Positions 39,307 through 64,000 of a stretch of DNA of 64,000 nt are shown in pieces. The notes below the pieces were generated by a model. The model ran no database searches. It was not told the origin of the DNA and was given only the letters and a program-made list of their open reading frames with translations. Each line of letters opens with the position of its first letter. The stretch's first letter is position 1. Source of the DNA: Takakia lepidozioides (taxonomy: Eukaryota > Plantae > Bryophyta); contig CM060733.1 in NCBI GenBank assembly GCA_030704615.1, forward strand, positions 124,001-188,000, in the 5' to 3' direction. The translations under genes were made by a program, and so were the position numbers.

Positions 39307-42300
39307 TCACCAGTAATCCCCACAAGAACACACCCCATCTTGGAAGTGGTGAAAGCGATTGGCATCCCGCACAACAATTGTTCGCTCAACAATCTTTGAG
39401 ATGAACTTGGTAGCTGTGTGGCAGTCACCACATACCCCAAGGTTTTTTATCACACAGAGAGGTGTCCCAGGGAGGGTGCTGATCAGCCCAAACGCAATGG
39501 CAAGCTTCTCACTGTGGTGGCAAAGAGAAGATTCCTTTTGCTCCTCTTCCACGTCATGCAATACGAATCGCGTGTCAGGCACATAACCAGCATCCTTCAT
39601 CCACTCGGACAATCTCGTCAGCTCAGCATGGATTTCCTCAATTTGTGGATGCAAGTCATCTTCTACAACAAATGTATGCACCTGGTTGTCCACCTCGATG
39701 CAGCTATGCCCTGGCTCCTTCCTTACACCTCTTCCCTGCATCAGTTTTCTGACCTTTGCTTGATCGTTCCACCTGCCAGCTGCAGCATATATGTTTGATA
39801 GCAGCACATAAGTTCCCTCCTCCTGTGGATCCAACTCGAGGAGGCAATTCATCACTCGTTCTGCTAACTCAATGTCACCATGAATTCTACAGGCACCAAG
39901 CAAGGCCCCCAAGACAGAAGCACCTGGTTCAATTGGCATTTTGTTAATGAAATCCTCTGCATCATTCAATCGTCCTGCACGGCCAAGAAGGTCAACCATG
40001 CACCCAAAATGCTCCACTGTGGGAGTGATGATATGATCTTGACTCATGGAATGAAAGTAGTGATGACCTTCATCCTCTAGGCCTGCATGGCTACATGCAG
40101 AGAGAAGTGATATGAAGGTGCTGCCATTTGGCTTGGAGCCTTCCTGTTGCATTTGTTCAAATAGTTGCACGGCATCCCTACCACACCCATGCTGACCATA
40201 CCCTGCGATCATTACATTCCATGAGACCACACTTCGGTGAACCATATTGTCGAATACTTGACGCGCATCCTTAACACTACCACATTTGGCATACATGTCA
40301 ACAAGGGTATTCCCCAAGTTGACATCTGGCATGATTCCAGCCTCAATGATGAGAACATGTAGCTCTTTGCCCTTTTCCATGGCAGCCAGGTTAGCACATG
40401 CATTGAGAACACCAAGGTAGGTGACCTTGTCTGGTGTCAACCCTTCCTGTGTCATTTGTGCATACATCTCAAGAGCCTCCTTACCACACCCACACTGAGC
40501 ATAACATGTAATCATTGCGTTCCATGAGACCACATCTCGTTTAGCCATATTGTTGAATACATGGCGTGCATCCTTTATGCTCCCGGACTTGCCATACATG
40601 TCAACAAGGGTATTCTCCAGAGTGATATCCGGTGGAATTCTAGCTTCGAGGATGTCAGCATGGACCTCTTTGCCCTTTTTGAGGGTTGCCACACTGCCAC
40701 ACACACTTAGAACACAAATGTATGTGACATTGTCCCGCGTGACCCCTTCTCGTACCATTTGCTCATACACCTCAAGGGCCTCCCGACTGTAACCATGGCC
40801 AGCGTATCCTGCAAGCATTGCATTCCATGTGACAGTATTTCTTTGAGTCATATTGTCAAATACTCGGCGTGCAACCCCCAAACTACCACATTTGGCATAC
40901 ATGGCAACAAGAGCAGTCTCCAGAATAACATCGGGGGCAATTCCAGATTTGATTATGTCAGCATGGAGCTCTTTGCCCTCTTCCAGGGCTCCAAGGCTAG
41001 CACAGGCTTTGAGAATGCAAATGAATGTGACATTGTTGGGCATCACCCCTTCCTGTATCATGTGCTTGTACATCTGAACGGTCTCCCTAGCACACCCGTG
41101 CTTCACATATCCTGCCATCATTATAGTCCATGTATACACACTTCGTTCCGGCATTTTGTCAAACACATGACGTGCATCCATCACACTCCCGCATTTTACG
41201 TACATGTTGACAAGGGTGTTAAGTAGAAAGATGTTTAACTTCAATCCACTTTGGATAATGTGGGCGTGTACTTGCTTTCCCTCCGCTAGGCCTTGCATGT
41301 TGATGCACTCCCGCAAGAGACACGCGTATGTGTCAGAGTCTGCCGACGTGCCACGGTCCTTCAAAATGAGCAGGGCCTCTTTCAGTTGTCCTGCCTCACA
41401 TAGTGTCCTCACCTGACCACATTCTGCTTGACTTTGAGCCATTGCAGCTAGCTCTGCTTTCACCCAATAAGGGTTCAAACATCGCTCAATCCAAAGGGCC
41501 TCCTTTGAGCGCTTATGTCTGAAGTCTGCCGACTTTGGACTTTTCTGTGAAAACCACCAGTGGGCAGCTGACCACCCATAGTTTCAATAACCTTCTAGCA
41601 GACCAGACTTACAACCACCAGGAACTTACCTTCAGGAACTTACTCTCATCCTCTGATAACAAGGAAGAACAACCTCAGACAATGATCCCAATAGTCACTC
41701 ATCTAAACCCTTGCAGATACAATCCAGTTCCAAGATATCGTCCTTCCAGCTTGAGTCAGAGGCTGCCCATGAAAAACGCTTTTCCGTCCTTAACGATCTT
41801 AGCCTCACCTTATCAAACCTGTTGTCCCACCACTGTGAAGGATCTGAGAATAACTCCCGCCAGAGCTGATCTCCACTCATTGTTTGGCCTGCATGCAAAC
41901 ACCATTCAAACATAGATCGTTGAAAATATCCTAATTCTTCAAGTCATATTGCTTCTAAGCTTTCCACAATATTTCTCTTTGTGTCCTGTTGTTCTGCTGC
42001 AGACCAAATAATTTCTTTCTTCTTCCTGTCAATCGGTCTTCCTCAGTCAAGCGCATTGTGACTGCAAGTGCAATCACGTTGGCTAGAGTCGACTCTGTAT
42101 CGGAGAGTGACAGTAGCAGATGTTTATGGTCGGCACCGTCGCATAATTCCTTGTCGTCAAGTGTGCGTGGGCCGAATTTCCATACTCGGGTGGTTAGAAA
42201 CCCTAGAACTGGCTCGCTAGACTAAACACTAAACCCCAGGGGGTACATCATAGCCAACATTCGCACGATGAGTCTCTCTCTGCCCTTACCCATCTCTCAG

Positions 42301-43107: not shown

Positions 43108-44301
43108 ATGGCTGTGTCTCCGGGGGATTTTCGATGCCCCATATCGCTGGAGCTGATGAGTGATCCGGTGATTCTGGCAACAGGGCAGACGTATGATCGG
43201 GCGTCGATCCAGAGATGGCTGGAGAGTGGACAGGTGCGGTGCCCCATGACGAAGCAGGTGTTGTATGACACCAAGCTCATCCCTAATTATGCTTTGCGGA
43301 GTCTCATCTATCAATGGGCTCAGGCAAATGGGGTGGATCTCAAGAAGCCGGCGGAGGTGAGGCCTGCGGCCACTCATAAGGGGGGGCCGCAGAGGGAGCT
43401 GCATACGAGAGTAGTGGAAGGGTTGGTGAAGAAGGTGGCGAGTGGAGGAGTGGATGAGAGAAGGGACGCAGTGAGGGAGATTCGTGGGCTTGCCAAGGAG
43501 GGGCGTGAGACCCGTGTGGCCATTTCCGAAGCTGGGGCTATCCCGTTAGTGGTGAGCTGTCTGTCGTGTGGAGACGCTCAGACTGAGGAGAATGCGGTGG
43601 TTGCCTTGCTGAACTTGAGTGTGGATGACGACTGGAAAGTGGGGCTTATTGCTGAGGGTGCGTTGGAGAAGATTGTGCTAGCCTTGGAACAGGGGTCTAT
43701 GGAAACTCGGGCCAGCGCGGCAGTGTTGCTGACCTCCCTGGCCATGGTGGATGTCAACAAAGCCACCATCGGGAGCCGCTCGGACGCCATCCCCGCACTC
43801 GTCAAGCTTCTGCTGCAAGGGAACTTGCGTGGTAAGAAAGACGCAACCACTGCCCTATTCAGTCTCTCCATGTACCATGCAAACAAGGCCAGGGCAGCGG
43901 TGGCAGGCATTGTTCCCGCGCTCCTTTCTCTCCTCAAAGACGGAAGCAGCGACACAGCGGAGCGTGCCCTGGTGGTGTTGGATCTCTTGTCCACCTGTGT
44001 GGAAGGGAGGGCAGCCATAGGTCAAGAGTGTGCCATGCCCACGCTGGTGGAGCAGTTGAAGACTGGCACAGCTCGGAGCAAAGAGAATGCAGCCGCAGTC
44101 CTGGCCATTCTATGCCAGAATTCTCCCAACGCGACGCGCCTAGCGTATCGTGCAGGGGCCCTCGAGCATGCTCGTCCCCTTCTCCTCTCAGGCACACTGC
44201 GGGCAAAGCGCAAAGCCTCCACGCTTGTCAAGTTGTTGAAGGAATGGGCCACTTACAGTGGTTACCAGCTCAAGGCAGCGAGGCCAGCAGCTCACACTTG
44301 A
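43108..44301 (+). CDS. Plant U-box/ARM-repeat E3 ubiquitin ligase (PUB, no UND domain), intronless
   Basis: U-box DFRCPISLELMSDPVILATGQTYDRASIQRWLESG..RCP..LIPNYALRSLI, followed by ARM repeats (EENAVVALLNLS, GKKDATTALFSL, SKENAAAVL). First ATG at 43108. Confidence 0.93.
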   Translation: MAVSPGDFRCPISLELMSDPVILATGQTYDRASIQRWLESGQVRCPMTKQVLYDTKLIPNYALRSLIYQWAQANGVDLKKPAEVRPAATHKGGPQRELHTRVVEGLVKKVASGGVDERRDAVREIRGLAKEGRETRVAISEAGAIPLVVSCLSCGDAQTEENAVVALLNLSVDDDWKVGLIAEGALEKIVLALEQGSMETRASAAVLLTSLAMVDVNKATIGSRSDAIPALVKLLLQGNLRGKKDATTALFSLSMYHANKARAAVAGIVPALLSLLKDGSSDTAERALVVLDLLSTCVEGRAAIGQECAMPTLVEQLKTGTARSKENAAAVLAILCQNSPNATRLAYRAGALEHARPLLLSGTLRAKRKASTLVKLLKEWATYSGYQLKAARPAAHT

Positions 44302-45304
44302 CACTACACACCAGTTGTGCCATGGCTAACCCATTGTTTCAAGGAGCATCTCTTCCTTTGCTATAAAGTTATGGTGTTGTAGAGTTTTTCAAGCATAATT
44401 CTCACAAAGCTTCAATTGGTGAAGAATGGAGGCCCATTGATGGAAGCTGTCTCCATTGCTACAGGTGTAGATGATTGGGTACATAGCCTGGGGGGTCTTT
44501 CTTGGAGAACCCTAGCGAAGACATCTGTAAGAGATGAGTTTGGAAAGAAAGGTTTCATACAGTGAAGGATTGGTCGGAGGTAGCATAGTTGTACCATAGT
44601 TGTGCCAGGTCTGATGGCGGGTAAGTGGTAGGCAACAGAGATGGTCACCACTTGGGGGAAGTGGTTGACCCTTATTTTACAGCTAAAATATACACCCTAC
44701 AGCCCCCATAGATGTTGGTAGTTCTCTTGGATATATCAAGGCAGCAGCAATACTCGGACTGACAAATGCTTACTGGAATTGCTATGTGCAGTACAACATA
44801 TTACTACTTACACAATTGATGACCTTGTTGATATACTTGTTTCCAGTTCACCCAAAGTTTGCAGTTTTGATAGTGACGAATGGTGCGGTACTCTATCTTG
44901 GTGCGCATTAAGGTATTGCCCATCTTAAGTAACAGTTGTTCTCACCTGTGCTGGGTGCTTGTGGATTTGCCGCTGCTAAACTTGTAGGATAGGGTGTGAC
45001 CCTTATGATCCTGCTGATTTTTGCACAGGTTTTCTGCATTTGTTGTGGCTAACTAGGCTCCTGGTGTCTGGGTTGGAGAGGGAGGAGGGGGAAATGTAGA
45101 GTGGGTGTTTGAAAGACACAGACTGTACTAAGTAGACCCTGCTTATCAAAGCCATGTGACCTGCATTGGTTCTTGCTGGCAAATGTAGTGCTCACTCAAA
45201 CCGACCGAGGACATTGATAAATTTTATTATAGATCTTGTGAGAGAATGTACTCCACTCACAAGTCCTTGCGGCCATAGACACACCCAGTTTGGACGGATT
45301 GTGT

Positions 45305-45307
<3 letters not shown>

Positions 45308-45351
<44 letters not shown>
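45308..45351. repeat. (GA)n microsatellite
   Basis: About 21 GA units. Confidence 0.95.
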
Positions 45352-45356
<5 letters not shown>

Positions 45357-45786
45357 TCAGTTTTGAACTGGACTGTCATTTCTACTTGAAGATGTAGTGG
45401 GAGGACTCATTTTGTCAATCCCTGCCCAGATCCACACTTGTCAACAGAAGGGACACTTTCCCATGCAACTTGCTCAGGCGTCTGAAGAAGTTGCCTCAAC
45501 AAATCATTCTCACAGCTTCCCTGCCTTGACCGGTGAGCCTAGCCTCCAACCAGAGCACTCGTCGCAAAGAACTGGGGCTGATTTCTCTTCGTTCATAGCC
45601 TCTCCTTATACAGCGTAACAGCCAGCCACGAGTTACGAGGGCAGTATAAATTACAGTATGTAATGCTCACCTCCGACATTTCCTTATCTTTTACCTCCAA
45701 GATATTTTCCTTTATTAATCCTATTTCTTCTTATCGTCAAAAGAAATGATGAAAGGGAAAAAGAAGTCATCCCATTTCTTTACGCA

Positions 45787-46014
45787 GAGGAAGACCCTCG
45801 TGTGGGGTGCTCCTTGAATTTTATGCCCTAGGGCCTCGGGTTGGCATGAAATTCAGGGAGCACCCTTCCTCTAGAAGTAAGGATTTTACAGCTTTTTTCC
45901 TTTGTATTTTTAGGGATCGTCTGGAACAGAATTTCCCAATGCGGGGTCTTACAGGGAAATTCCCTGTAAGACATATCTTACCCGGATATGTCTTACGGCG
46001 AATTTCCCTGTAAG
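45787..46014. mobile_element. Hairpin-rich dispersed repeat (second copy of the 6.2-kb element plus a nested palindrome)
   Basis: CCTTGAATTTTATGCCCTAGGGCCTCGGG at 45812-45840 is identical to 6163-6191, with an internally deleted right arm. A second inverted repeat lies at 45948-46014. Confidence 0.7.
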
Positions 46015-46752
46015 GCTGGGCCCTTTCTTTTCTTTATCTTTCTATTTCCTTACCTTTCCATTTCTTCTTTTTCCTCTTACGATTGAGTCTTTCTCTAAAA
46101 GAAACAAGCTGAAAAAGAAAAAGGCTGGGAAATCTTTACGGCGAGGAAGTCACCCGAGGCTTACTTCCGGCTTTTGAGGTTTAGGCAGACCCGGGAAAGG
46201 CGGAAGGACCGCGGGACAGTGACTTCCCTTAATATACCAAAAGGTCCTGCGAAAGTACTTTTCACATGGACGGGCGGGGCCGACTGTGGAGACGACGAGA
46301 AAAGACAGTCTCCGTCGACAGAAATGCCCTACGCCAAAGTTCAAACGGATATTTCGACGTTTGAATGCTTGCCACCCTGGTGTGGGAGAGAAACATAAGA
46401 GAGAGGCTGCAGTGCAGAGAGCGGATTGCGACGCTTTGCATGTGAGATCTGCGAGACAGTAGTGCGTGTGCGTGAGAGGCAGAAACAGCTGCAAGGTAGC
46501 ATTTGTGTCCCGCGCCCGGCCCTCCGGAGGTTTCCCTCAGGAGGAGCCCAGGCAAGTTGTGTTGCAAGCATGTCTTTAATATTCTAGCTGTGCCCGATCG
46601 ATTGACGAAGAGGCAGGGAAGCCCTGCTCCTCCGGGTGTGCTTGCATGTCAATGTAATGCTGTCTCGGCGTGTGCGATCTGGTGTTGTATCTCAGTTTGT
46701 GGTACGCAAACTGCTGGAGTAATTGTTGTACGTGCAAGATCAAACCGACTGA

Positions 46753-46776
<24 letters not shown>
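46753..46776. repeat. (GT)n microsatellite
   Basis: Run of gt units upstream of the LBD gene. Confidence 0.9.
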
Positions 46777-46786
<10 letters not shown>

Positions 46787-47189
46787 GAGCGAGAGGAACA
46801 TTTTTGCAACGTGCATTAGAAGCTTCAACAGCTGCTTTATGATGTGCCGACGAGAAATTGTGATTCCAAAAAAGAGCACTAGACGACTGGGCCTAAATCT
46901 TGACGCCAAGAGAAAGAAGGAGAGAAATGAAGAAACGGATAGACAGAGAGATAAAGAGACAGAGTTTGTGAAAGATTTTCACTGTTGATCACGAACATTT
47001 CATAAGGTAAATACCTAGAGATGTAATATATACATAAACAGTCCAGAATCCCCACATCTGACGCGGGCTATGCTGTCTCCATATGCTGAGTAGCAAAGTA
47101 GCATAGAGGATTCAAGTCTTTTTATCATGCTTTTGTGACTAACGATTCGTCCTGTGGATGCATGTTGTCTATTGTAGCGAGTCGGGGCC

Positions 47190-47924
47190 ATGGCATCAGA
47201 TGCGGACGGCGAACGGAACTCAAATACGAGTTCAGGCTCAAGCAGTACAGATTCGGTAGCAAGTACATTGAGATCGGTTTTGGACTGTACTACGTTTCAT
47301 ACTGGAAGGTCTAGGAGGAATCAGTGTGAGGCCTGTCGGATGAGCGGCAGTGTCTGCACAGATAAGTGCTTGATGAAAATCTACTTCCCCCGCGACGAAC
47401 CCAATATCCGAGACACGTTGAAACACATATGGGACACGTTTGGCTTCGTGAGAGTAAACAAAATGTTGTCACAACTCCACCGCCATGACCAGCGAGAGCT
47501 CAATGCAGCGAGCATAGCCTTTGAGGCAAGAGTCCGTGCCCAACACCCCATTGACGGTTGCTCCGGCCTGGTGAAAGCGCTACAACTCGAGAATGATTCT
47601 CTCAAGAAGGCCATTACACACTTGGAGCAACAAATTTCCAAGCTTCATATCAACAACATGGAAGTTAGTGGAACCGAGGTGGAGGGGTCAGGTGGGAGGG
47701 AAACTGTTACAGAGGCATTGTCTACTTCGATATGCGCAATAAATGTGTGTGCTCAACCGTCAAGGATATCATCTCTTCCTTATTGCGCAGTGCATGGAAG
47801 ACAGCCGATAGGGGTTGCGGGAAGGAGGTCACAACCGACGAGGGCCATAGATATTGCAGGGAGGAGGTCGGAGCGGCAGCCTGTGGGTGTGTCTGACAGC
47901 ATGGGACACTTGATGTTTCGATGA
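47190..47924 (+). CDS. LOB-domain (LBD/ASL) transcription factor, divergent
   Basis: CX2CX6CX3C (CEACRMSGSVCTDKC) followed by YFP, a GAS-block-like FGFVRVNKML...FEARVRAQHPIDGC and a leucine-zipper-like LQLENDSLKKAITHL. Possible 5'UTR intron at ~47007-47177. Confidence 0.85.
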   Translation: MASDADGERNSNTSSGSSSTDSVASTLRSVLDCTTFHTGRSRRNQCEACRMSGSVCTDKCLMKIYFPRDEPNIRDTLKHIWDTFGFVRVNKMLSQLHRHDQRELNAASIAFEARVRAQHPIDGCSGLVKALQLENDSLKKAITHLEQQISKLHINNMEVSGTEVEGSGGRETVTEALSTSICAINVCAQPSRISSLPYCAVHGRQPIGVAGRRSQPTRAIDIAGRRSERQPVGVSDSMGHLMFR

Positions 47925-50542
47925 AGTATGAGGGAAGCGGACAAAGATCACCTCAATGCTCAAGAAATCTAGGGCTTCTTTTGCACCAGAATTTGCCAGG
48001 TAACTTCTGAGTAGCTTCTTGACCTTCCCCTCCCAGGCTGATCCCAGGACGGATGAGTGTCATAAGCTCCCTTCTGAGTGTGGCACTGATCAGATTGTAA
48101 CACTTCAGGTAGCGTTAGTGCAGCAATGAAGCAACACTTGAGAGACTCATGTTCAGTGATCTCTCTCATCCGGAAGTCTCTCTCTATTTATTATGTCATA
48201 TGGGCCATAAAGTAGATTATAAGTTCGTGTAGCAAGTGCTGAATAGCATCAAAATATATAAGTTCTACTAAAAGCCCACATTAACGTTGAGCAGAGATCA
48301 GCGCAGTAACATTTCAACAAACCCACTCTAGCTTTGCTCCAAGCATGCAACTCAACCAATTAATTAGCTCTTTGAGGATGATTGTACCTAGCACAACTTG
48401 TCTGAGCCATCTCAACATGCGCTCTGGATGAGGTAATTCGTGAATCGGGAGCATCCAATTTGTGACATGGGCTCTGAAATTGTTACTGACCAGTATCCGT
48501 TAAATGGTTTGTCCTTGTTTATATGGCAGGTTTCTTTTCAAGATTATATACTTCAAATGAAGGCTTCCTTTTCACCTGGTGTCACCTCCCCACTGTCTTC
48601 CTCCCTCAGAATATCCATAGATCCTCCTTTCTGTCCAGTTGATCATCTCTTTTTCCTCATTATACTGGGTGACATAATGCCACCACAGCAAGCATGGTTT
48701 GTATCCATCGACCAACATCTCTCTGGGAGAGACCTGTGTGGAACATTACTTCTGTGCTGAGAACAATTCATGCAGTAGCCAACACAAAGAGTTATTGGAC
48801 CAGCTGGAAGGTTTTTATCACTGGTAGCGTATGTATTTTGCAGATCAAGGTCACTTATTTCCTAGAAGAGAGAAACCCTGGCTACTTTGACAGCATGCAA
48901 CGGAGAAGTGGGGGAAATGTACTGCTTTCATCAGTATGCATCTCTCTCACACAAACTCCTGGTGAAGAGCTATAGTACGAGCAAAACCTATTCATGAGGA
49001 CTCCTGTTTGTCAAATCTCTCTGCACCCTGGGCTTGTATGTATTGGTTGAATAACAAAAAAAATTCATAAGAGATTCAAAGCCAGAGATTGGTGCTTGTA
49101 TCCAGATGCTTCTTCACTTCCATGAGTTTATCTTAGACTGCAGAGCAACATCGGAACCTCTGGCATGAAAATCTGACCCTCTAGTTGTTCTTATATGAAT
49201 GGTGATTGCATACACATATTTTACTGTGGGTTTTGACTCAAGGACTACTTTTGCGTTCATAATAGCCAGCAATATCATCAATGATCTTCCTCAGATGTCT
49301 CACTTCTGTGGAGCTCTCTTTATAGTCCGGGCTCTGTGCACTGGGCAGTTTGATGGTGGTGCCCGTCCAGGGTCACACACTGATGTCATCAACCTAATAA
49401 TCAGACTGCGAAGAACACACACACCAGCATTTGCCAGTTACTTTGTTGTGGTACCTACTTGAGTCCCATCTGCGACGATCCCTTCATGCCAGCACCAAAC
49501 TATCACATGGCAGATCTCATGGTATTCTGTGTTTGATTAGTCAGTATTGGTTTTACGCCTGGCAGCATGGGCAAGATCAGTTTTTCTTGTAAACTCAATG
49601 ATGGCTTCTGCACTCCAGCCTAACTTCGTGATATGCTACTCTTTTTATTCTTTGACCAGAAAGATTCAAATTTACCTTCAGGACTCTCAGGAGGGAGGTG
49701 AATCTCTAGATGTTATAAATTACTTTCAGCACAGGGCAAGTGCATTTAGTAAGTGATGAATATTGAAATGACCTGGTGCTAGAAAGAAATGTCCATCTGC
49801 AGAAGAGACTTTTGGAGCAGGACTTCTGAACTCTTCACTTCATTGGCAGCTCTTTAAGCTCGTTTTTGCAGGCGAGTTCTTGAGACACATCTAATGCTGT
49901 GTATAACTAAGAGAGGTCCCCCATTCCTTCGCAAATGCGATGCCTAACCCATCCACCACCACATAGAGCTAGCCCTCTGTCATTTAGCACAATCATAGAG
50001 ATGCTTCCTCATTGTTTATCAACAACAAAAAGTCAAATCTGCTCTGTTCTCAGCTTAAAGCTCTTGGCCTCAAAAGCCCATCCAATGGGTGTACACATGT
50101 TTCTTCGAGTACAAGTCTACTATTTAATTGTTAGGATTCAGTGCCTTGCCTAGTCACTCGGCCTCAGAAGGCTCTTTACTATAGCTGATTGCTCATTCAG
50201 GCCACATGTTATACGATTTTAAGTGAGAGCAAAAGAGCCTAAATTTGAATGCATTCGCATTTATACAAGCTGTAGAGCAAGTCAGCTTCCTAAACCAAAC
50301 CAATTCGAGAAGAAAATAACAATAAAATTTTAATGAAACTTAGGGATAAAAACATCTCAGAAAGCTAATGTGTCTAATGTATCTAATGTATCTGGAATCT
50401 CCCACTAGAAAACGATCTAGGACCAAACCCATCATTGATACAATCAGAGGATTCTTTGTCACTCAACATACTAAATGACTAAAGACAGAGGTGGGGGAGC
50501 ATAAAGACCAGGGAATAACCAATGCAGGAGGGGCAGATGAGG

Positions 50543-53500
50543 CTATGATTCTTCATGAATGTTGAACATAGAGAGGTCTTCTATTTCTTTTTGAGGGAGT
50601 GTCAATGGTTGAGAACTGCTGAGGTGATGGTGAATACTAGCAAACTTGTCCTGAAGCCTTTCTACCTGTTCACATTCAACAATAAGACGAGATCAGCATA
50701 ATCTCCATGTCCTTGCAACCCACAGCGGATTGAGATGCTATCATCTGAGAAGAAAATGCACCTACATAGAATCAGATAAGATGTGCTCTCTTCACACAAC
50801 GTGGGAATCCAAAGGAAGTATTTCTCTTCAATTACTAAAGGTGGTGTATGCTTCAAAGAGAACATACCTCCACAACTTAGATTTTCTCTTGAACGTTTCT
50901 ATTTCATGAACAACTTTTTATGGTGAAAAGCGCTGGAGTTGGGCAGACCATTGAAGGAATCAACAGCAAAGACCAGTGGTACATACCCGCCGCAGTTCAA
51001 GCTCAAGGTCAACTTTCTGTTGCTCCAAGGCACGACGGGCCTGGGCTACGTCGAACACATGATCAATATCTTCCTGAAAGGCTGCCTCCAGATTTTCACG
51101 TAGCATTGCAGGAAATGTATCCACCACTGGCATCAAAAAGAAGCAGTTGAACTGCACACCTCAAATCCACCATGTGTGCTTGATCAGCTTCAAATGCAAT
51201 ATTTCTGCTAGACATAGTGGTATGTAGAGCTTTATCTCTAAATACAAGCAGTTCATAAGTTCACCCTTTTATCAGCTAACAATAAGAGTGAAATATTGAT
51301 AAGTGGGGGCTAGGAAGTACTTTCATTTCCGCAGAAGCTACACAGTGATCACGAATGCCTTCAAAGATCTGAGCAACCAGGGCATGTACGATCTCCTCCG
51401 AAGTCCGGGCCAGCTTCCGGTTCCAGAGAGTGCTTTCTAGGAGGTCCACCAGTCTTGCATGTGCTGTCTGGCTGCCTTCTTGGTTTGTGCCAGCACTCTT
51501 GGCTTCAGGGCGGGGCTTGTTGTCTTGCTTATTACTGTTTCCAACCACTGTCGGCACTGTCCCATCTGCAACCATGCTTGCTGCTGTCGTTGGCTGCTCA
51601 CTGGTTCCCAATGTGTCCAGATACTGCTTTAAGCCAGATCGACTCTGCAACAAATGTGGAAACAGGAATAAAGACCTAGGACAGTGAGAATGATTAAATA
51701 CGGAAGTAAAAAGGGAGGGAGAACTACGACAAACTAAAGAAGGATACAAGAATCAACAAGAGATGAAATGAAGGAAAGGAAAAGGAATTTCTTCCAGCCT
51801 CCATGGAAAGCTGGACAAGCGCATGGGGCAAGAACACAAGAAAGCACCAGAAAACCAGGCCAAAATCACTGAAGGAAGACGTCATGAAGGCAGACTGCAA
51901 ACCATTTCTGGCCTTAACAATAGAGATGATACCCATTGTGGCTTTCCACTCCCATGTGGCTTGGACAGAGCAGGTAGGGGGAAGAAAGAAACTTTACAAC
52001 GCCCACAGAGAGCCCCAAGGGCCCAGTGGAAAAAGTAGAACAACAAGAAACCACGTCATAAAAAATCAACCGACACCCAATGAGGACTCATGCAGGTAAG
52101 CTACCAGAGGGTCATTTACTGTTTAGTGGATGCCTTCCCAGCAGTTGTCCTTGCAGTCTAATAACCTTGAGAGTCCGGACCAGGTACAGATAGAAAAGCA
52201 AATTAGATTGTCCAAGAAGCATGTCCTGCGTATATCAAAACGATCACACAATCTGTCTGCAAAACAAGTACAAGTTAGCAAACAGAGCTGGTCAAATGGA
52301 TGAACACCATAATGTAACTAGTGGTGCTCATGATCACCTTGTTATGCAGCGACCAGGAGACATAGCGCGTCGTGCTTAAAAGATCCTCCATACACCTGTT
52401 CCAGTCCAAGAAGTCACTACAAATCAGCAGATAGGATGGGGCACTTCAGTCTGTCACAAGATGATGTATTCTTAGATAGGGAATAAAAGGTCAACACTAC
52501 TGTAGGTTGTTATGGCAAGCAGTACATATGGTGAAGCATACTTTTCCCGGCAGCCTCGCTCCGTGGACTCCACAAATATGTGAAAAGCAGTGGCCACACG
52601 CTTCATGAACATATCATGCCCACTTAGATACTCGCCATCCTTCTGCAAGTCGGGGAGACATGGAAAAATAAGCTAAATTCATTGCATAATGGCTAAGTTG
52701 ACATAGATATGGCTCTGACAACCCTCTCCCCTTGTCCCGAAATCACACCCTCTCCTCCCAGTCAGTGGAGTAATGAGATCCTTCTATAGGCAACAGTTGG
52801 ATTCTCACCTGCAGAAGATAGAGTGCAATAGGAAGTAGCCTGCGGAGAATGTGTGACAACCTGAACCCTAACTGCACCCACCAACAATGCAGCTAACATC
52901 ACTACAGAAGGGCACAAATAGATAGGACAGCTATAAATCGCCACAACGGTTTGGCAAGCCAGGCCTTAACCAACCACAAATTTGTCAAACAAGTGATGAA
53001 TGCAACCTTTCCTGATTTCCTATCAATGGAGAGCATCCATCACACAGCTGGAAGCAAAATTGGCTATTCTGAGGAGGGATCTACACTGTACTGAAGATTA
53101 ACATCCAGAATCATCGATCCAATGTGAACAGCAGTTCAAGGCTTTTGAATTTGAGACATTACTTGATGCAAAAATGGCTCAAAGACATCTCGTGCTTTGG
53201 CAACTGCTATCACACACGCCGTCCTGCATCAGAGATCCTCCGCTTCTTCAGAGCAGGAAGAAATCACAGCATTGAAGTTCCATGACAATATCTCCATCAA
53301 ATTGATGTAGAGGTAAGAGCTTTCTGGGGCTTTCATAGTTCTGGAATCCACGAGAACTCAATACATTCAGGCAAATCCCACTATAGGGTTGAGCCTTTTC
53401 ATTCCTCCCATCCCTGCTGCTCCCTTGTTCTGCTCAAAAATATCTGAGCACGGGTAGATGGGCCACACGGCTGTGGCAAGCACATTTCACCTCCTTTCAA

Positions 53501-56500
53501 GAGTGTTTGGGCTTTTCTTTCAAAATTCTTTCATTACCTGTGTGTTTCGTTCTTTCCACAGACATGTGTGCTCTTTTGACACAATCAACCAATGTCTAGC
53601 ATAGAACATCTTTCTGTCGAAGGAATGACAAATGTACCTGAAGTAGTTAGTACCATCATGGATGTCTTCAACACCACATGCATTCACAATTTCTTCACGG
53701 CTTATGGATGGGCACTTGACCCCTCCCACCACAAATCGAAACTCGGCCATGGCTCTATGATATTGTGCCCCCCCATACAAACGCATCCCTGCATTCTGTC
53801 AGCACACTGTCATGAGTTTTTGAGTTTACATTTCTCTCATCCACTTCAAATAGACCACTCCCCTTCCTAAGAAAACTAATTATTTTGATTAAGGACACCA
53901 GGGATGGAGCTGATCATCTATCTTTGCTACCCATCAAGGAAATTGATCTAACCCACATCCTAAGAAACTTGGGAAAAAATCAGCTTGCAAATTTATCCCC
54001 ATCACCATTCCACTTTGGTACGAGACAAGATAACAGTCAGTTGAGCGGATTACTGGCATATGCTTGTATGGCATTTGCAAGCCATCCGTGCTCACAAAAG
54101 CTCCCCCACGAACACGCTCATCTTGTAGTGTTTCTCCTGCACGGATGTACATGTAAGTTTGTAATGCCCATAGAAGAGACCTATGTCTTCAAACTAGTGC
54201 AAGCAGAACTACAAATTATATGCCAAACTACAAGCCCAAGTCGTAAACTGAAACATCTCTGCAGAATCATAGTCAGAGCTTATCAACCTCTTCGCAATAT
54301 AGAGTACAAAAGTCTCAGAAGATAACTGCTCGCCCAGGAGACTCCTCCGAGCACTGGAACAACTAAGTATTAGCAAGCCCTGCAGCCTGTGTATCCAAAC
54401 TGATACTAGAGATGAGAAAACACTCACCAAATTTGTCAGGTGGGGCTACGACTGTTCCCCTGAGCAACAGCGACAGCTGCCAAAGCCATTGAACCACATT
54501 TATACACAAGGAATCCACACATATAACCAATTGTCCTCACTTCAACAAGTTGATAACAACCTTTTGAGACAATGACAGCTGACATCTTTCATGAAAAGCA
54601 CTTGGTAGTCAATAACAATGCTATATGAGGTGTTGTCCTTAACATCAGTGACAACCTTGGCTAGAAATGAATCTCGAAAAATTCGCCCTCTCTCTTTCAG
54701 TTTCGTGCCATCCAAATTGCTGCAATCCACCCCAAATGCAGTAGTCAGGTAGGTTAAGCTTGATCCTTCAGCTGAACTTTGTGAAGCTAACTGCCTCTGT
54801 AGCCATCAGAAAGACTCCTCCCTCCCTCCTGTGCTTGTGAAGAAACACAAAAATAACAGAAGCTCAGAAAGTTCTTATTGTTCGAGCAATGGCGAACTTG
54901 ACTCTTAGAATGTAAAAGTCGTTTTCATGCTTTCCAGAGGGATGAGAGCAAAATGGCTCAATCTCCAGGTGTTCTTCAAAATACCTGACAAAGGTACGTT
55001 GTCATATATTTTGACAGAAGGTGGAAAGATGGGACAAGGGGGAAGAAACTTTACAACATTCACAAGAAGCTCAAACATTTTATGGGACAATAATGCATGA
55101 CAAACAAAGCACTATAAACCCCAGCCTAAATCCCTGCATAGAAGACAGCCTCTAATGCAGTTCTGGCGGGAGAGAGAAAGAGGGCGGGAGCCGAACCCAA
55201 GCTCTTGAATGGTCTGGTGCAGCTTGATGGTGGCATTGCGATACTCCTTGTCCAACAGTGGAACAATGGCTGGCACGCTGTCCATGTACCTTCATACACC
55301 ACATTCACTGAGTTGCTTTAGCATCTACTAGCAGCAGACTGTTATATCAGGTTCCCAGGTAAACAGATGAAGGTTTGGAAAAAATATATATGCCACCAGT
55401 AGACCTGTCACAAGGGCACTTTTGCGCAATGGGCTAGTCTTGAGTGAGGGTCACTGAGCACAGACTGACTAGCCTGCAAGACCCCCTAATGCCTGCACAC
55501 CAGTTTTAATTGCCAAACACTACGAAGATGCCTGATGTTTTAAGTGGGACCTAAACACCTTCAGTACAGCTCAGACCTGTACACTAATGGTGGACCACCA
55601 CAAGGCCCACTAAAGAGATTCTGCTTGACAGTTAGAAATGAAAAACATAGCAGCTACCGGTGCTGCAGCAGCTGTTCAAGGAACCACCGCAACCGACTGA
55701 CCCCCACTCGAGCACGCTCGTCCTTTAACAATGCACGGTCCATTTTCTCCTCCAAGGATGCCACATCCTGTGCCTCTCTCATTGCCACCGCCTAACCATG
55801 CGAGGGGTACCAGATTTAGAGATCCATTTTAGAAGATGCCGAAGATGCAGCACAAGAAGACAGCACAGTACATGGACATCCATGAGAGGAAAGAGACCAT
55901 ACACTGCACAAAAATTCCAATCCCTACAGTTAGCCACAACCTCGCGGAAGTGATCATTTGATCGATAAACGGAATCTCGGCCAGCGCCCACTCGTCCTGA
56001 TGGCACAGAGGTGAAAAAGGGAGTGTCCCCCAGAATTTTGCAATCCAGCAGACGGGAAGGAGGCCGTAAAAATAGTTCAACATCGGCAGAGCGTGCAAAT
56101 TGAGGAATGCGAGTGTCCATTTTTGTTGACACAATTACTGTCCGTGACAATTCTGGGTCCATCTACCACCAAGAACACGGTCAGAAAGTTCTGAGATTAT
56201 CAATGCACAAGCCCAAATCCTTTAGGCGTCATGAGACATGGTGAAGATTTGAATCCTCTACCAAGAGCCTGTCATTAAAAACCCTTTCTTAGTGCCATCT
56301 GGGCCTTATCACTAGGAGACAGGCAACAGCGCAACATTCATGGACAAGTAGGAATGGAGACACCAAGAATTGACAAACAAAATTTCCACTCATCCATCGA
56401 CGCAGACATGTCCAACTCCCAGAGAAGGTAGACAAGGTAAAATATTCAAAGGATGCCAAAGAATCAAGCTTAACATGGCTGAATCTCATTAGTTAATCTG

Positions 56501-59337
56501 CTGCAGGAGAGAGAGAGAGAGAGAGAACGAAGTCCCCTGACCCTCAATTGATCTAGCTATGGCCCATTTACCCAGACATGGACCCTCTCGTCCCCTATGG
56601 AATAGCAAAAAGACCATGATTGTAGGCTATGGACTTCAGTACAGGAGTGAGGTAAAAATGGTTTTGGCCTGGCCCTGTCCCAAGACTGGGGTGGGTGCCT
56701 GGGGTCATAGGGCGCCTGGCCTAGGACCCGGGCTACCTGGGCTTCATGTTCTATACCACAGGGTAGCTATGGGAGCTTTTGGGGTTTCTCAAGTGGGCAC
56801 GATTTCGACTCTCTCGTCCCGGTCTCTTGCCCAAGCTGTGCTGACCATATTTCGTCTGATTTAAAACAACCCAAATTGCTCAAATGGCGGCATGAGCTGA
56901 ATAAGAACGGAAACCTGTAGAAACCAATTTGAAACCAGATGAAAATATCGTTGTCTAATTTTCATCTGCCTCTGTTACAGAGTCCTGGATCTCGGGCAAC
57001 CAATTAAAATTAAGGAGATGAGGAGATGGACTTCTTCAGCACCACAGCTTGTGCAAGAGACAGGGAGGAGAGAGACGAAACCGTGGCCACTCCAGAAACC
57101 CTCCAGAAAATCTTGAGTCCATTTCCGGACAGCTACCCACAAAATCTCTCAAAAATTCCCCAGAGTTCCCACAGCAATCCTGCGGTATAGGATATGAAAC
57201 CCGGGTAGGCTGGGCTCCAGGCTAGGCGCCCTACAACCCAATTACCCCAATCAATTTGCATTTAGTCAACAGAAGGCCCAAGGAGAACAAAAGGAGGGAC
57301 AGACCTGCATGACAATGCGGCGGGTGGTAGCATTGCTCCAATCACTGCAGTCTTCAAGGCACAGGATTATGAACTCTTTGTGCTGCATCTTGGACTGCAC
57401 CAGTGCCTCCACTGCTTGCCCTTGTGCCTGCCACAAGGAAACAAGAATTGGAGAGTACGGACAACTAACATTACACATAGCCAATTCTGACTACTCCACA
57501 CAAATACCAGCAGAAATCCACAATGCAAGTTATTGTTGGCACAGAACCTACAAGAATACTACGGATAGTCTAAGCCAAGAGATTTAGTGACCCACTCTTG
57601 CAAGCAGAGCAGAATTCAAACCCATGTGCTTGGCCTTTTTCACAAATGAAGGTTGAAAGATACCTGGAGGGAGTGGTTTTTGCGACCAGGAGCTGCAGCA
57701 ATGAGACCTGGGGTGTCGATGATGGTTAGATTGGGGCAAAACTTGTACTCTATCTTCACTACTATCTCCTTGGCCCAAAATTGACATGCCTCTCGCTCCA
57801 GTCGCATATTCTCTGCCTCAATATACGCCTGGATTGAGACATAGCACAGCAACTGTGAGACCAAAATGGCGGAGGTAAACTCCCCCAACCTAAGCACCTA
57901 TTGCAGCTCAAGAGCGGCTTGGTGACAGCATTGTTTGTCAACTTTTCTAGAAACTATTCATCAAACATTGCTGCAAAGGAGGAAGCTCCCTTGCAGATAC
58001 ATATGTAAGAGCAACGTCAGTCTTTTTTTGTTGACCTGACTGATTATTCACATAGGGAAACATCACACAACGATAACAGGGAGTTGGTGAGATTGTCACG
58101 ACAAACACGCTTGGAGAAGAAGTGAATGTAGTATGCATGACAGTAGGCCGGGCGCAAGAAATATGTTAGGTTGCCCTCAACAAGGAGGGACACTGTACAC
58201 CATCCTGGGCAAGTCAGGTCTTCATGAGATGTCCAGGTTCCAGAATCTAAAGAAGTCTGAGTCTTCCGTGAAAAGTTGATTGTGGCAACAGACAATCCAA
58301 GAGGCTTACCTGCATTACTATCCCTCGTAGTCTCCTTCCATCCTTAAATGAGTCACTGGAAGTAAGAGATTCACCTGGAGTTCTTCAAGGCTTTTCTCCT
58401 CATCCCGTGGCGGTCTGTCCTCAGAGAGCAGGAAGCAGCGGGGTTCGGTGCAGGAAGCATTATACTTCATGTGTAGCGTGATGGGCCGGCGAGTCTTGGT
58501 TCCCCCACCCACATGGTTAAACTGAAAGCCCATTAGAGCTTCAATCAGAGCACTCTTCCCATCAGTCTGATGGCCAACAACCAGAATCGCAGGCGCATCG
58601 AAGGGTTTATGAAAATCCTGTGCTAGGCTATGAAGGTCGTTGTATGCCTCGTATAGCTTCTCGTTTCCAGAAGAACGATAGAAGTTTTCAGGTGCTTCAA
58701 CAAAGTTTCGGGATGAATCCTTTGGGCTGTCTTTGGTGTCGCGCTGGAACATGTGGAGCCTGCCGAAACCATTAAGAGCGGAAGCAGGGGCTACTGAAGG
58801 GTTAGAAGGGTATTGGGTTAAGGGATTCATTGCTGGACTCTGTTGCGAGATGAGAGGTGAAATCTGAGAGGAGTCATTAATATGCGATGCCGACCCATGA
58901 CCATGGGAACTGAATTGCAATGGCATGATGTTCTTTGAGGGGAATGCAGTAGAGGAATGGGGAACGCCACAGCCTGAGCCAACACCTGAAGAAGCCGGGG
59001 CCGAAAAGGCACTAGGGAGAGCTCCGGCATGCGAGTAAGGGCTGGTGTACCCTGACAAAGATCCCAACGATGGACCCCCATGAGAGTTCTCCCCGACGGC
59101 AGGCCCAAAGTTATAAGAGGACAAAGGTGCTGAGACAGGAATGGTAGATTGAGAGGGACCAAGGGAGGCGGGAGGGGGTGACTTGCTCCTCCACGGCCCA
59201 GCTATCGGTGACGAACAATTCGATGCTCTCGGAGAGTTTCCCTGTGACAGACTGCCGTTGGTGCATGCCTGTGACGAAATCCATCTTTCTGCCACTCCAG
59301 CCCTCGCTTCTTGTGAAGGACCCCCACCGCCACTCAT
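50543..59337 (-). CDS. ARC5: Dynamin-related plastid division protein ARC5/DRP5B, ~17 exons
   Basis: Motifs LYEAYNDLH..APAILVVGHQTDGKSALIEALMGFQFNHVGGGTKTRRPITLHMKY, IIDTPGL, TKMD, AGMRLYGGAQYHRAMAEF and FNCFFLMPVVD. Exon 1 is 59337-58375, then 57828-57664, 57427-57305 and 56162-55941; the last exon is 50665-50543. The ARC5-type sequence differs from DRP5A. Confidence 0.93.
56700..57240. mobile_element. Foldback/MITE element with long imperfect terminal inverted repeats in an ARC5 intron
   Basis: TAGGGCGCCTGGCCTAGGACCCGGGCTACCTGGGCTTCATGTTCTATACCACAGG (from ~56708) is the near reverse complement of 57179-57234. Complementarity continues inward (56800-56845 vs 57038-57082). Confidence 0.8.
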
Positions 59338-61353
59338 AATTCCTATGCCGTCCCTCTCTTGCCCTATTCAAAGCGGCTCTGCACGTCAAAACAGATGCCT
59401 AAGACAAAGGACTTTCGATGTCAAGAAACTTGGGCAGGCTTACTGTCAGTGCTCGACCTGAAACATCATTCCAAAATGCAGACTAAACAACTCTGAGAGG
59501 CTGCACCCACCCTGCTCAATATCGTTTCGAGGCCTTCCGCAAGAACAGAGGTCCTGACCTATCCTGTACCGGAGGACAACACAATGCAGATATGGAAGCG
59601 AGACACACCTCAACACCATAGGTCCTGGCACAATGCCAGTACAAATCTATACTTCTGGGATTTTTAATTCAGTGCCAGGGGTTGTCAGATGACAGACATC
59701 ACCGTCAAAATCAAACATGCCACAACAGGTGAACAAAAAGAAGCAGACACAGCGAGAGAGAGTCAGATTCAAATACCGATGCAATACCTTCAACTGCAGG
59801 GGTGGAAAAAGAATTACAAGACGCACAATACCTACCTCCTCTCAACAACATTGCGGCCATCGAACAGCAGCTGCCATCTCCGAGGCAAAGCAGAGATGAA
59901 ATCAGAAACGTGTGGAAGCAAATTAAAGCAGATAACTTAGAGCGAGCAAGCAAGCAAGCGGGAAAGATTGAACGCTGCGCTACAAACACGGCACAGCCAA
60001 TGCGCACTGGACCCAGTGCGAGCGAGAGAGAGACTGAGCTCTCTGCCACGTGGCTACATGCTAGCTGTTGGACCCATGCACTCTCGGGGTCCCAGCAGAC
60101 AAGGTGCCATCTCAGCAAGACATATCTCTGTTAACTACCGACGTCAAGACATGTTAGTAAACGGGAGAAAGGATATCTAGATTCTGCAGTACCTACTATC
60201 TACGTACCTAGTACCTACTGTAGAATATTTAGCACAGAACCATATGCGCCGTCGGGCGGATGGGACCCATGTGACATATGTCATGTGTATGGCCATGATG
60301 GGTGGAATGTGAGCCACATTCAAGGCACCTGCAAACGCAAAGATGAGCACCAGCTTTGTTCTTCATCTCTCAAGCATCGTCTTGCACAATCTGTCTTTAA
60401 TTCAGAGATTACGCTGTGGCTCTCTGAGCTCATCTAGATGCAAGACAACTCATCGTGCTTCAAAACTCAGACTCTACATATCGCTCCGGGGAGGTACTTC
60501 TTTTTTGAGCTTTAGTTACTCGTGCTTTTGGTTGCAAAGAGGTCACAGATTCATCCCCTGTTATGAGGTTCTGTGTGTTGTATTAAATCATTGCATTTGC
60601 ACAAGATTGTTTTCTCTATCCAAGTACAAGGGGCAAGGTCTCTCCGGATTGTGTGCCGTGTGGCTGTAAGAAGGGTACAAGAAGATTTAACATTCGTATG
60701 GGAAATTCCCTTCCTCTTTCTGGGTTAATTCTTCTCGGTTGGTCTGAATTCATCTAGATTATGTAGCTAGCACAGAAGCGAATAGTCTCAGTCGATGGTC
60801 GTGGGACTGCCAGCGTCTAATTGCATGTTTGATATTCAGCTATACGAGAATGATGTTCGAGTGGTACCAAGAGAGCAAGTTTTGATTTCCGCTATGGAAA
60901 GTGCTGATGATGGCGCTGCAATTGAGGTAGAAGTATGGTGTACGCGTTGACCTTCCCTTGGAGAGATTTTAGCCCCACAATTTTCAAAGTGGCAAATTTG
61001 TTGACCAACTACAGCGCGAGGTGCAAACCTGCAGAATCTATCTCACTGTACAACCGATTTGATCTTTGGGGAGCAGCAGCAGTTGTTGGTCTATTTCTTC
61101 GCTGCTCCAATATATTGTCCAGGTGACTCGATGTGGGCCATTCTGCACTTGCGCTGTCTGAGTCAATACACTTGTCTTGCTGCTCGCTCTAGATAAGCAA
61201 ATTACTCCTAGGGCCCTCGTTCTGAACAGCACATGGGTACGCGCATTGATCTTTCGTGTTATGATGCAGGTGCCCAAGAGCAATTGGACACTACAGCCTT
61301 GAAGGCTTACACCTTACTGTCAGAGCTTCAGTAACAACAAGTTTACTGGATCC

Positions 61354-62199
61354 ATGAGTACTCTGCAAATCACTCCACTCACGAGGGCCATCGGCGCCGT
61401 GGTCGAAGGCATTTCTCTGGCGGAACCGTTGCAAGATGCAGAGCAGGCAGCCATCAACGACGCCTTACTTCAGTATCAGGTGCTCTTCTTCCGCAACCAG
61501 CCGATCACTCCACACCAACAGCACGCCTTCGCCAAGCGTTTCGGTGATTTGCACATACATCCAATCTACCCAAACTTAGGCCCCGAGTTAGAGGAAATCA
61601 TGGTACTGGATTCTGACGGTGATCACCCCCCAGACAATGATAAGTGGCACACCGACGTCACTTTCATTGAGACACCGCCCTTGGGCACAATCCTGAGCGG
61701 CAAGCTCATACCTCCCGTGGGTGGTGATACCCTATTTGCAAGCGGCATTGCAGCCTTCGAGGCGCTCTCAAAGCCATTGCAACAATTTCTTCTTGGGCTA
61801 AAAGCAGAGCATAGCTTCGTCAAGTCATTCTCGCAGCCCCGGTACCACTACGAAGGTCGAGGGGACCCCAAGGCGCTGTGGGAGGAAGCTGTGAAAGAGC
61901 ACCCGCCAGTGGTGCACCCTCTCATCCGCACTCATCCTGACAGTGGGCGCAAGGCTCTCTTCCTGAGCCAAGGATTCCTGACCCGCATTGTGGATCTGCA
62001 AAAGGACGAGAGCGATGCATTGCTGGGATTTCTGTTTGCGCATGCTACAAAGCCCGAATTCACAGTGAGATGGAGATGGCAAGCCAATGATGTGGCCTTC
62101 TGGGACAACTGCATATTGCAGCACTACGGCGTGGCCGATTACCTTCCGCATCGCCGCATCATGAACCGCGCCACCATCCTGGGAGACAAGCCCTTCTGA
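61354..62199 (+). CDS. tauD: Fe(II)/2-oxoglutarate-dependent taurine dioxygenase (TauD family), bacterial-type, intronless CDS
   Basis: 281 aa with FGDLHIHPIYP, PPDNDKWHTDVTFIETPP (H99-x-D101), GGDT, HPLIRTHP.SGRKALF, KPEFTVRWRW, WDN..QHY (H257) and RRIMNRATILGDKPF. Colinear with the E. coli TauD sequence as remembered. Confidence 0.93.
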   Translation: MSTLQITPLTRAIGAVVEGISLAEPLQDAEQAAINDALLQYQVLFFRNQPITPHQQHAFAKRFGDLHIHPIYPNLGPELEEIMVLDSDGDHPPDNDKWHTDVTFIETPPLGTILSGKLIPPVGGDTLFASGIAAFEALSKPLQQFLLGLKAEHSFVKSFSQPRYHYEGRGDPKALWEEAVKEHPPVVHPLIRTHPDSGRKALFLSQGFLTRIVDLQKDESDALLGFLFAHATKPEFTVRWRWQANDVAFWDNCILQHYGVADYLPHRRIMNRATILGDKPF

Positions 62200-62387
62200 T
62201 CATCAACGCCTTCCACACCACCCCTCCCATACACCATCTGCACTGCACTGACATACACAGAAATGTATGCAACTACTTAGAAAAAGATGGATGGATGGAT
62301 GCCAGACCACTTCTAAACCACTTCTAAACTTAGCTGGAATAAGGAGCCAGGCATATAGCAATAAAGTAAGAAGCAAATGTAGATCAA

Positions 62388-62525
62388 TTACACTCCCTTC
62401 CATGTACCATAGTGTAACCCCCAGTGAAGTTACACTCCCCGCCGTATATCCTGGTGTAACCCCGAGTGGGTTTATGGTCTCCGCCGTGAAACCTGATGTA
62501 GCCCTTAGTGGAGTTACACTCCTTT
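62388..62525. repeat. Degenerate ~42-bp tandem repeat x3 with internal GTGTAAC/GTTACAC palindromes
   Basis: Units begin TTACACTCCC (~62388, ~62430), TTATGGTCTCC (~62472) and TTACACTCC (~62514). Confidence 0.7.
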
Positions 62526-64000
62526 CGGTTCCATGTCACTCAGAGAGAGGGTGGGGAAGATTTGACATGCCAAAAGGCAGCGTATGTCCTGTGCATTAAG
62601 TTCTTACATTAATCCTAGTGTTCTCCCTTATATAATTGTCTAAGTTTTGGGTTATGGTGGTGTGGTGCTATGATAGCTGTTGGAGCCAAGGGTCGGGATC
62701 AATATCACATGAGCAGAGCATGAGCATGCTCATGTGAGCACAACCCACATTCATGGGGGTTTTATGTTTTTAAACTGCGGTCACATGAGCTATATGTTTT
62801 CAAAACGGAATAAAACCATTGGCGGATACTTCATAAACTTCATATACTTTGTGGTTCATAGTTGAGAATTGTTCTCTTCTCCTGTACAGAATACATATGT
62901 ACTGCCCTATTGCGAGAGATGCTTGGGCCAAAGTTCTAAGTTTCTATGCTGCTTGTTTCCATGCAGCTTCAGTGCCTTATGGATTGTTCTTGTGAAGGCT
63001 ACTTGGTTCCTTGCCTAGTAGTTCATGTTCTTTCCTCATAGTTGGCATTCCTTGCCTCTCCTGCCTCAAACGTTTGGCATCTGCAAGAGAGTAAATGAAA
63101 ATCATGTTGTCTTCCTATCATGCTTCCTCCAGCACCCCCTTTTCAGCTGTATGAGCTATATTCTTTTATTATATGCTTTTAGTGAGTTGAATAGTTGTTG
63201 TAGTCCTTGTGCTGAGGCTGGTTTGCATTAGTCAGCCAAAAGAACTTCAATTGTGAACGTGTAACATCAAAAATGCTTGTAACAAGTAGTGAAAAGTAGC
63301 TGGTACAGCTTGAAAGTTACATGCAGGCCCTATCAACAAACGTCGCTAGGATGTGAGCACCATCCAACTATATTATACTCGTCTTCTAAAGTGGCGTTGC
63401 CCTTTAACAGCAGTGCCTGATCTGCGGCCAAATTGTGGGATTAGCAGCAGAAAATCAACCTTTGGAATGATTTCAATACCATCAACCAATAACATCCCCA
63501 CTGCCGAAAGGGTGCAAGCACTGTTACAGTTCCAATGTGGGTTGCAAAGTGCCTGGTGGAAGCATCTCCCCTTCGAATCCTCTTACAGGATCAAGTACGT
63601 AACATCAACTCTCCTCGACATTATTGCAGACCAGCAGAGTTATACAATTTCTGATACAATTTTATTTGCATCAGAGGCGACCCAGATCATATAGTCCCTG
63701 CACCTTTGTTCACCAACTTTCAAAATCTTGAGGTCTTAGTCTTGGCCCTGGTCATCAAGCCTTGGTCCTGTTGGGAACTGAACAATCCTAGTTGTGAACT
63801 GAAACTGGCACTCATGAGTTCAATCACTTTATCTGAGTTCGTACACACACTTCACAGCACAATGCCTTCATGAGATGCGGTATGACTGATGAATTTGGTG
63901 TGCCTACGGGGCCCTTACAAAGTTCAGTATTTATTTGAGAAGTGAGCCAATGGACTGGGCAAGCATCAACTTGTGTAGAAAGCTTAATAAGCATGAAGTG

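Follow-up and report, generated by a model that had tools for sequence, protein, structure and literature searches.

A predicted taurine dioxygenase gene of probable old proteobacterial origin in the moss Takakia lepidozioides and other seed-free land plants

Background

Taurine dioxygenase (TauD) is known from the bacterial tauABCD system, an operon in which the gene for the enzyme is accompanied by ABC transporter genes. Bacterium-to-plant transfer of metabolic genes is a well-known kind of event, with bryophytes being rich in such genes, and a catalogue of bacterium-to-plant gene transfers has reportedly been compiled by Ma et al. (in Mol Plant, in 2022). A bryophyte super-pangenome study gives 1,809 families of bacterium-to-plant transfer (PMC12513842). 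About 95% of soil sulfur is organic, and sulfonates are described as 'not directly available to plants' (PMC4267179).

We analyzed a gene in a stretch of 64,000 nucleotides of Takakia lepidozioides DNA (hereafter the window; GenBank assembly GCA_030704615.1, contig CM060733.1, positions 124,001 to 188,000 of the forward strand; coordinates below are positions in the window). An earlier reading of this stretch, made without database searches (the sequence-only reading), had proposed the gene as a bacterial-type tauD acquired by horizontal gene transfer (HGT). Its product has the same length as TauD of Escherichia coli (EC 1.14.11.17; PDB 1gqw and 1os7), is colinear with it and about 63% identical, and shares with it the 2-His-1-carboxylate triad and the 2-oxoglutarate and taurine contacts; the gene is a member of this enzyme family, and the locus is not the tauABCD system. 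We consider it very probable that the locus is a genuine gene of the plant nucleus encoding a taurine (alkanesulfonate) dioxygenase dependent on Fe(II) and 2-oxoglutarate, and that the gene came from one old proteobacterial transfer and has descended vertically since.

Results

Coding sequence and predicted enzyme

The coding sequence (CDS) occupies 61354..62199 on the plus strand and consists of 281 codons plus a stop, with an ATG start and no internal intron, confirming the intact, intronless 281-residue open reading frame (ORF) first described. The ORF matches the Pfam TauD/TfdA profile PF02668 over its whole length (profile positions 1-267 of 267; E 1.3e-69; 235.5 bits, against a cut-off of 27), and the protein scores 426.9 bits against the NCBIfam taurine dioxygenase equivalog NF007104 (cut-off 313). 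The top match among solved structures is E. coli TauD 1gqw (E 4.5e-112), colinear across residues 3-281, and each of the TauD blocks listed in the sequence-only reading is found in that alignment. Judged by sequence comparison, the window protein is a true TauD. An in-frame stop at 61300-61302, 51 nucleotides 5' of the ATG and inside the last exon, bears out the claimed absence of a targeting extension. No tauABC neighbours are present, as had been stated, the flanks being a dynamin-family gene and unannotated sequence, and a search for a second tauD copy inside the window found none.

Conservation of individual residues was scored in an alignment with 151 TauD homologues, and the retention of the active site that the sequence-only reading had described is upheld throughout. 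The iron triad H99, D101 and H257 aligns with H99, D101 and H255 of the E. coli enzyme and is invariant in the 151 homologues. T126 and R268, equivalent to the 2-oxoglutarate contacts Thr126 and Arg266 of E. coli, are likewise retained without variation among the homologues. The taurine-site equivalents H69, Y72 and R272 are retained, as are N95, V102, S158 and F159 (the E. coli taurine contacts being His70, Tyr73, Asn95, Val102, Ser158, Phe159 and Arg270). At every one of these positions the window protein carries the residue that is conserved in 145-151 of the 151 homologues.

Plant locus and spliced transcripts

The host-type genes in the same window are two DYW-PPR genes, one U-box/ARM gene, one LOB-domain gene and one split, intron-bearing dynamin gene, in agreement with the plant-like flanks reported earlier around tauD. 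Two adjacent intronless DYW-type PPR genes (739 and 723 residues) lie on the minus strand at 34593-36812 and 39307-41478. The 5' part of the dynamin-family gene lies at 55782..60014 on the minus strand, with coding exons at 58321-59367, 57643-57897 and 55782-56162, and positions 1-69 and 66-120 of the Dynamin_N profile sit on two separate exons. What stands of the neighbour previously named ARC5 is a real intron-bearing dynamin-family gene with a Dynamin_N domain; it runs on the minus strand, divergently from tauD.

Transcript structure was taken from sequencing runs read as contigs, in which rare variants are dropped and depth is not a measure of expression level. The run X5, whose sample and study are not those of the best holder of the DNA, was taken as RNA on the strength of its spliced joints, and its contigs are spliced for both tauD and the dynamin gene. 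In the latter, an intron of 457 nucleotides at 59379-59835 is removed (a CT..AC joint in contig 9, equivalent to GT..AG on the minus strand). The first tauD exon, which lies in the 5' untranslated region (5'UTR), extends at minimum over 60286..60493 on the plus strand (contig 10; donor GT at 60494-60495). An alternative second 5'UTR exon of 283 nucleotides occupies 60840..61122 on the same strand (contig 11; AG at 60838-60839, GT at 61123-61124); contig 11, with 341 nucleotides, consists of 28 nucleotides of exon 1, exon 2 and 31 nucleotides of exon 3. The last exon occupies 61270..62665, also on the plus strand (contig 12; acceptor AG at 61268-61269), and contains 84 nucleotides of 5'UTR, the entire CDS and at least 466 nucleotides of 3'UTR; contig 12, with 1413 nucleotides, covers 61268-62665 and runs through the CDS into the unique 3' flank. 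The GT..AG joints of tauD in X5 are 60493 to 60840, 61122 to 61270 and 60493 to 61270, exon 2 being retained in one form of the mRNA and left out of the second.

The tauD gene of this species is thus transcribed and spliced. The proposal of an acquired 5'UTR intron holds, with two GT..AG introns present in the spliced contigs; the splice acceptor that had been placed at 61323 is used in no contig, and the true acceptor ends at 61269. The divergent transcripts are separated by a gap of no more than about 270 bp at 60015..60285 (the dynamin transcript reaches 60014 and that of tauD begins at 60286 or before it), and X5 has zero depth in the bin 60083-60269. This gap would act as a shared bidirectional promoter. 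Three degenerate 42-nucleotide tandem repeats are found in the 3'UTR (62388..62513, plus strand), and X5 has an insertion of 15 nucleotides at 62516, just past these repeats.

Extra copies and continuity of the locus

Part of the locus is multi-copy in the DNA run X1. The segment 60753..62171, which runs from within intron 1 through exon 2 and intron 2 and takes in all but the last 28 nucleotides of the CDS, is represented there by contigs at 293-738x, against 53x in the upstream and 67x in the downstream flank; the contigs at this depth lie over 60753-62068, at about 6-14 times flank depth. Contigs of a further run, X6, part from the window sequence at 60733 and again at 62171. Because the depth in X1 is raised and the contigs of X6 depart at both ends, we conclude that 60753-62171 is present as several extra copies with other flanks. 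The window locus would be the parent of these copies, since the repeated segment includes its introns and the unique exon 1 and 3'UTR of the RNA occur only here. A version of tauD with a 7-nucleotide deletion at 62107, found in the run X7, is probably a broken extra copy.

We considered a transposon around the window copy and rejected it: no terminal inverted repeats bracket the copy, only short pairs at chance level are present, and the flanks are single-copy in X1. Farther downstream, 62514-62887 and 63636-63822 are very high-copy repeats (summed X1 contig depth in the thousands, with many loose ends at 63691 and 63733); these are probably small transposon fragments 3' of the tauD 3'UTR.

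One X1 DNA contig spans 58400-60742 and holds both dynamin exon 1 and tauD exon 1. Because this contig joins the two first exons, and splicing links tauD exon 1 to the CDS exon, the adjacency of the two genes is supported without the assembly. Continuity of the interval between the ARC5-like gene and tauD, the point at which an assembly error had been thought detectable, stands in part: the X1 contig carries it to 60742 and spliced RNA carries it beyond, but no single DNA contig bridges 60742 to 60753. The X6 contigs were rejected as independent support for this junction, as they leave the window at both ends of the segment and probably derive from another copy.

The unbridged interval, together with a GC content of the ORF (about 0.55) that lies above that of the flanks (0.43-0.49), could be taken to indicate bacterial contamination or a chimeric assembly, an explanation that we regard as extremely unlikely. 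The break between DNA contigs falls at the repeated segment and is not a coverage gap; spliced transcripts link the unique upstream exon, the CDS and the unique 3' flank; and three other plants have orthologues in assemblies at chromosome scale, in one of these plants with an intron in the CDS. The GC content at third codon positions (GC3) of the ORF is 0.64, inside the host range (0.47-0.65 in the measured neighbouring host genes and exon), and the base composition of tauD is now the same as that of its host. The gene is not contamination, and it belongs to the plant chromosome.

Relatives in other plants

Similar genes are found in a second moss, Ceratodon purpureus (two copies, M758_6G134800 and 6G135000, with 85 and 84% identity to the window protein), in the lycophyte Diphasiastrum complanatum (two copies, O6H91_11G000700 and 11G001000, 74 and 73%) and in the liverwort Calypogeia fissa (two copies, 70 and 62%). 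These named copies sit on chromosome-scale records, and the best plant matches are annotated in the databases only as hypothetical or unnamed proteins. Four further plant-type sequences with low-GC flanks come from Logan and JGI contigs, giving a plant-type set of eleven sequences. A profile built from these eleven found no further plant member among its best 120 matches; Physcomitrium, Marchantia and Selaginella, whose proteomes we assume to be in the database, are likewise absent from the best 120 matches. The sequence-only reading had set against HGT a vertically inherited clade of orthologues across green plants and algae. Such a clade exists in part, in Ceratodon, Diphasiastrum, Calypogeia and the four contigs, and no plant-type tauD of an alga or seed plant, nor a close homologue from any other eukaryote, is among the best 120 matches of the protein and profile searches, which cover annotated proteins.

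All plant-type copies with measured flanks (seven loci, representing five different proteins) are islands of high GC content. Their flanks have 34-48% GC and are not densely coding, which fits plant DNA and not bacterial contigs. In two JGI metagenome contigs (L005:794-1639 and L006:487-1332) tauD has a GC content of 0.69 and a GC3 of 0.96, with flanks of 42-48% GC, and so forms an extreme compositional island; this JGI tauD is sister to Ceratodon copy b. The Ceratodon and Diphasiastrum genes have an intronless CDS, like the window gene, whereas the Calypogeia copies have CDS introns: copy a has one GT..AG intron of 1072 nucleotides (L003:10427-11498), the removal of which reproduces the annotated protein exactly, and copy b (L009:6001-8742) has 1758 nucleotides of intron in total and, as annotated, an N-terminal extension of 44 residues. 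When 44001-64000 of the window was compared by tblastx with 10 kb on each side of the Ceratodon, Diphasiastrum and Calypogeia genes, tauD alone matched.

For the window gene compared with Ceratodon copy a, the ratio of nonsynonymous to synonymous divergence (dN/dS) comes to 0.09, with a dS of 0.9, and the other computable plant pairs give values from 0.05 to 0.16. Because these pairwise ratios are low, tauD is under purifying selection within plants.

Bacterial origin and number of transfers

The plant-type sequences were already grouped in a quick tree of 121 rows (SH-aLRT 92). In a more careful tree of 66 rows the plant-type clade has support of 100/99 on a stem branch of 0.2, within which the moss subgroup that includes the window protein (100/98), the lycophyte subgroup (99/87) and mosses plus lycophyte (99/94) are recovered. 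The plant clade adjoins a Chitinimonas clade (87/92); the clades of other betaproteobacteria, Enterobacterales and Aeromonas are further from the plants. The tree is unrooted, and any root placed among the bacteria nests the plant clade within proteobacterial TauD. Chitinimonas is also the first bacterium in the search with the plant profile, reached after the score has fallen from 521 to 489 bits, and gives the best bacterial identity (69-70%). When one genome from each of 185,579 species of bacteria and archaea was scanned, none came closer than Chitinimonas sp., at 69%.

The proposal of HGT into this plant survives in its main part, in that a bacterial-type TauD of proteobacterial descent is present in a real plant chromosome and has eukaryotic features; the gene is not special to this genome, as the clade of plant copies makes clear. 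The sequence comparisons point to an old acquisition common to some seed-free land plants and not to a recent one in this species: given the support for the plant clade and the purifying selection within it, the acquisition reads as old and shared.

Branching among the plant sequences conflicts with accepted plant phylogeny, the Calypogeia copies being basal on the longest branches of the tree (0.39 and 0.53). A constraint that joins mosses with the liverwort lowers the log-likelihood by 16.4 units (p-AU 0.06, borderline and not rejected). This conflict, with mosses and lycophyte joined at high support, and the patchy distribution of the gene would both fit several transfers, whether as separate bacterial gifts to mosses, lycophytes and liverworts or as plant-to-plant passage from one lineage. 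We consider several transfers unlikely, yet a genuine alternative. The basal position of Calypogeia may be an artefact of its long branches; the plant copies form a single, strongly supported clade on its own stem and share, relative to the aligned bacteria, a length difference of one to three residues around residues 164-170; and no bacterium falls inside the clade among the best matches, nor does any of the scanned species genomes exceed 69%. Most likely the gene reached plants in a single old transfer, was then handed down vertically and was lost many times. We infer both the date and the donor of this transfer, the assignment to a Chitinimonas-like donor being moderately supported.

Unusual residues and the assembled allele

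Codons 253-255 (62110..62118, plus strand) read TGC ATA TTG in the assembly and encode Cys-Ile-Leu, where homologues have Arg-Val/Ile-Thr. The motif, which is no formal hallmark of the family, is WDNCILQH in the assembly, as against WDNRVTQH in E. coli and WDNR-(V/I)-TQH in 151/151 homologues, with Cys253 and Leu255 standing four and two residues ahead of the iron ligand His257; the Ceratodon, Diphasiastrum and Calypogeia copies all retain Arg253 and Thr255, unlike the assembly. Base 62110 is T in the assembly and C (CGC, Arg) in all covering contigs of X1, X5 and X6. Because all three runs read C, Cys253 is either an error of the assembly or, at most, a CpG-to-TpG variant private to the assembled individual. 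Leu255 looks common to all runs, since no run is listed as differing from the window at codon 255.

The assembled allele with Cys253 and Leu255 may be weakened or altered. Carried further, this would make it a weakened or decaying allele in the assembled individual, with R253C and T255L beside the distal histidine impairing the enzyme and the open frame being a remnant. Such decay would accord with the invariance of Arg253 and Thr255 in the 151 homologues, with the CpG-to-TpG nature of the change at 62110 and with the upstream ATGs in the 5'UTR (6 in the exon-skipped form, 12 in the exon-included form). We nevertheless judge it distinctly unlikely, given that the reading frame is fully open, that Arg253 appears in three read sets, so that the cysteine would be private or an error, that the terminal branch of the window protein in the careful tree is short (0.051) and that its dN/dS against Ceratodon is low.

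Other changes are common to the mosses, whose copies depart from positions at least 95% conserved elsewhere by W128F (Trp128 in E. coli, Phe in the mosses), A116G, V190L and T209L; T255L is a further change, seen in this species. Taken with the absence of a taurine transporter gene nearby, they raise the question of a new job in plants, in which the enzyme would act on another small molecule or another sulfonate (for example, a sulfolipid breakdown product) and not in taurine scavenging. Every known contact for taurine and for 2-oxoglutarate is retained, and the equivalog score is well over its cut-off, which makes a new job rather improbable in our estimation; TauD activity on taurine-like sulfonates is the most likely function predicted from the sequence.

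Discussion

In the model that we favor, a proteobacterial tauD would have entered an early land plant in a single old transfer, its nearest living bacterial relatives being Chitinimonas-like betaproteobacteria, and would have been inherited vertically since, with survival in certain mosses, lycophytes and liverworts, but with losses elsewhere. In the window, transcription would be directed away from the dynamin-family gene, out of the gap of about 270 bp. We infer the substrate, cellular location and physiological role of the product as follows. The enzyme is probably cytosolic, because it has no targeting sequence. With 2-oxoglutarate and O2, it would hydroxylate taurine, or an aliphatic sulfonate like it, at C1; the hydroxylated product would fall apart into sulfite and an aldehyde, with succinate and CO2 as co-products, and the sulfite would enter the plant's own sulfur assimilation (through sulfite reductase or oxidase).

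Mosses, a lycophyte and a liverwort share a TauD that is conserved and expressed, which suggests that dependence on microbes is bypassed in some plants. We offer tentatively, with the balance somewhat against it, the broader reading that some seed-free land plants free sulfur from taurine-like sulfonates unaided, by means of an enzyme that was acquired a single time from a Chitinimonas-like bacterium, close to the time when land plants arose, and that selection has maintained in some lineages over hundreds of millions of years. If true, this would run contrary to the textbook view that plants rely on microbes for sulfonate sulfur (PMC4267179). The locus also provides a clean case of a transferred gene settling in a eukaryote, in that it stands head-to-head with a host gene across a very short gap; settling-in has further involved intron gain, in the 5'UTR here and in the coding region in the liverwort, and a host-like base composition.

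The transfers catalogued in the bryophyte super-pangenome study are of the same kind, each an intron-poor bacterial metabolic gene in bryophytes, often accessory (PMC12513842). In the open-access main texts searched we found no mention of a plant TauD or of its transfer, and existing plant-transfer catalogues may already list the tauD family. Among bacterial enzymes, Chitinimonas TauD is the neighbour in the tree at 69-70% identity and is without the extra plant residues near positions 164-170. Unlike tauD of E. coli, the window gene is monocistronic, has introns in its 5'UTR and stands without adjoining tauABC or the bacterial sulfate-starvation control.
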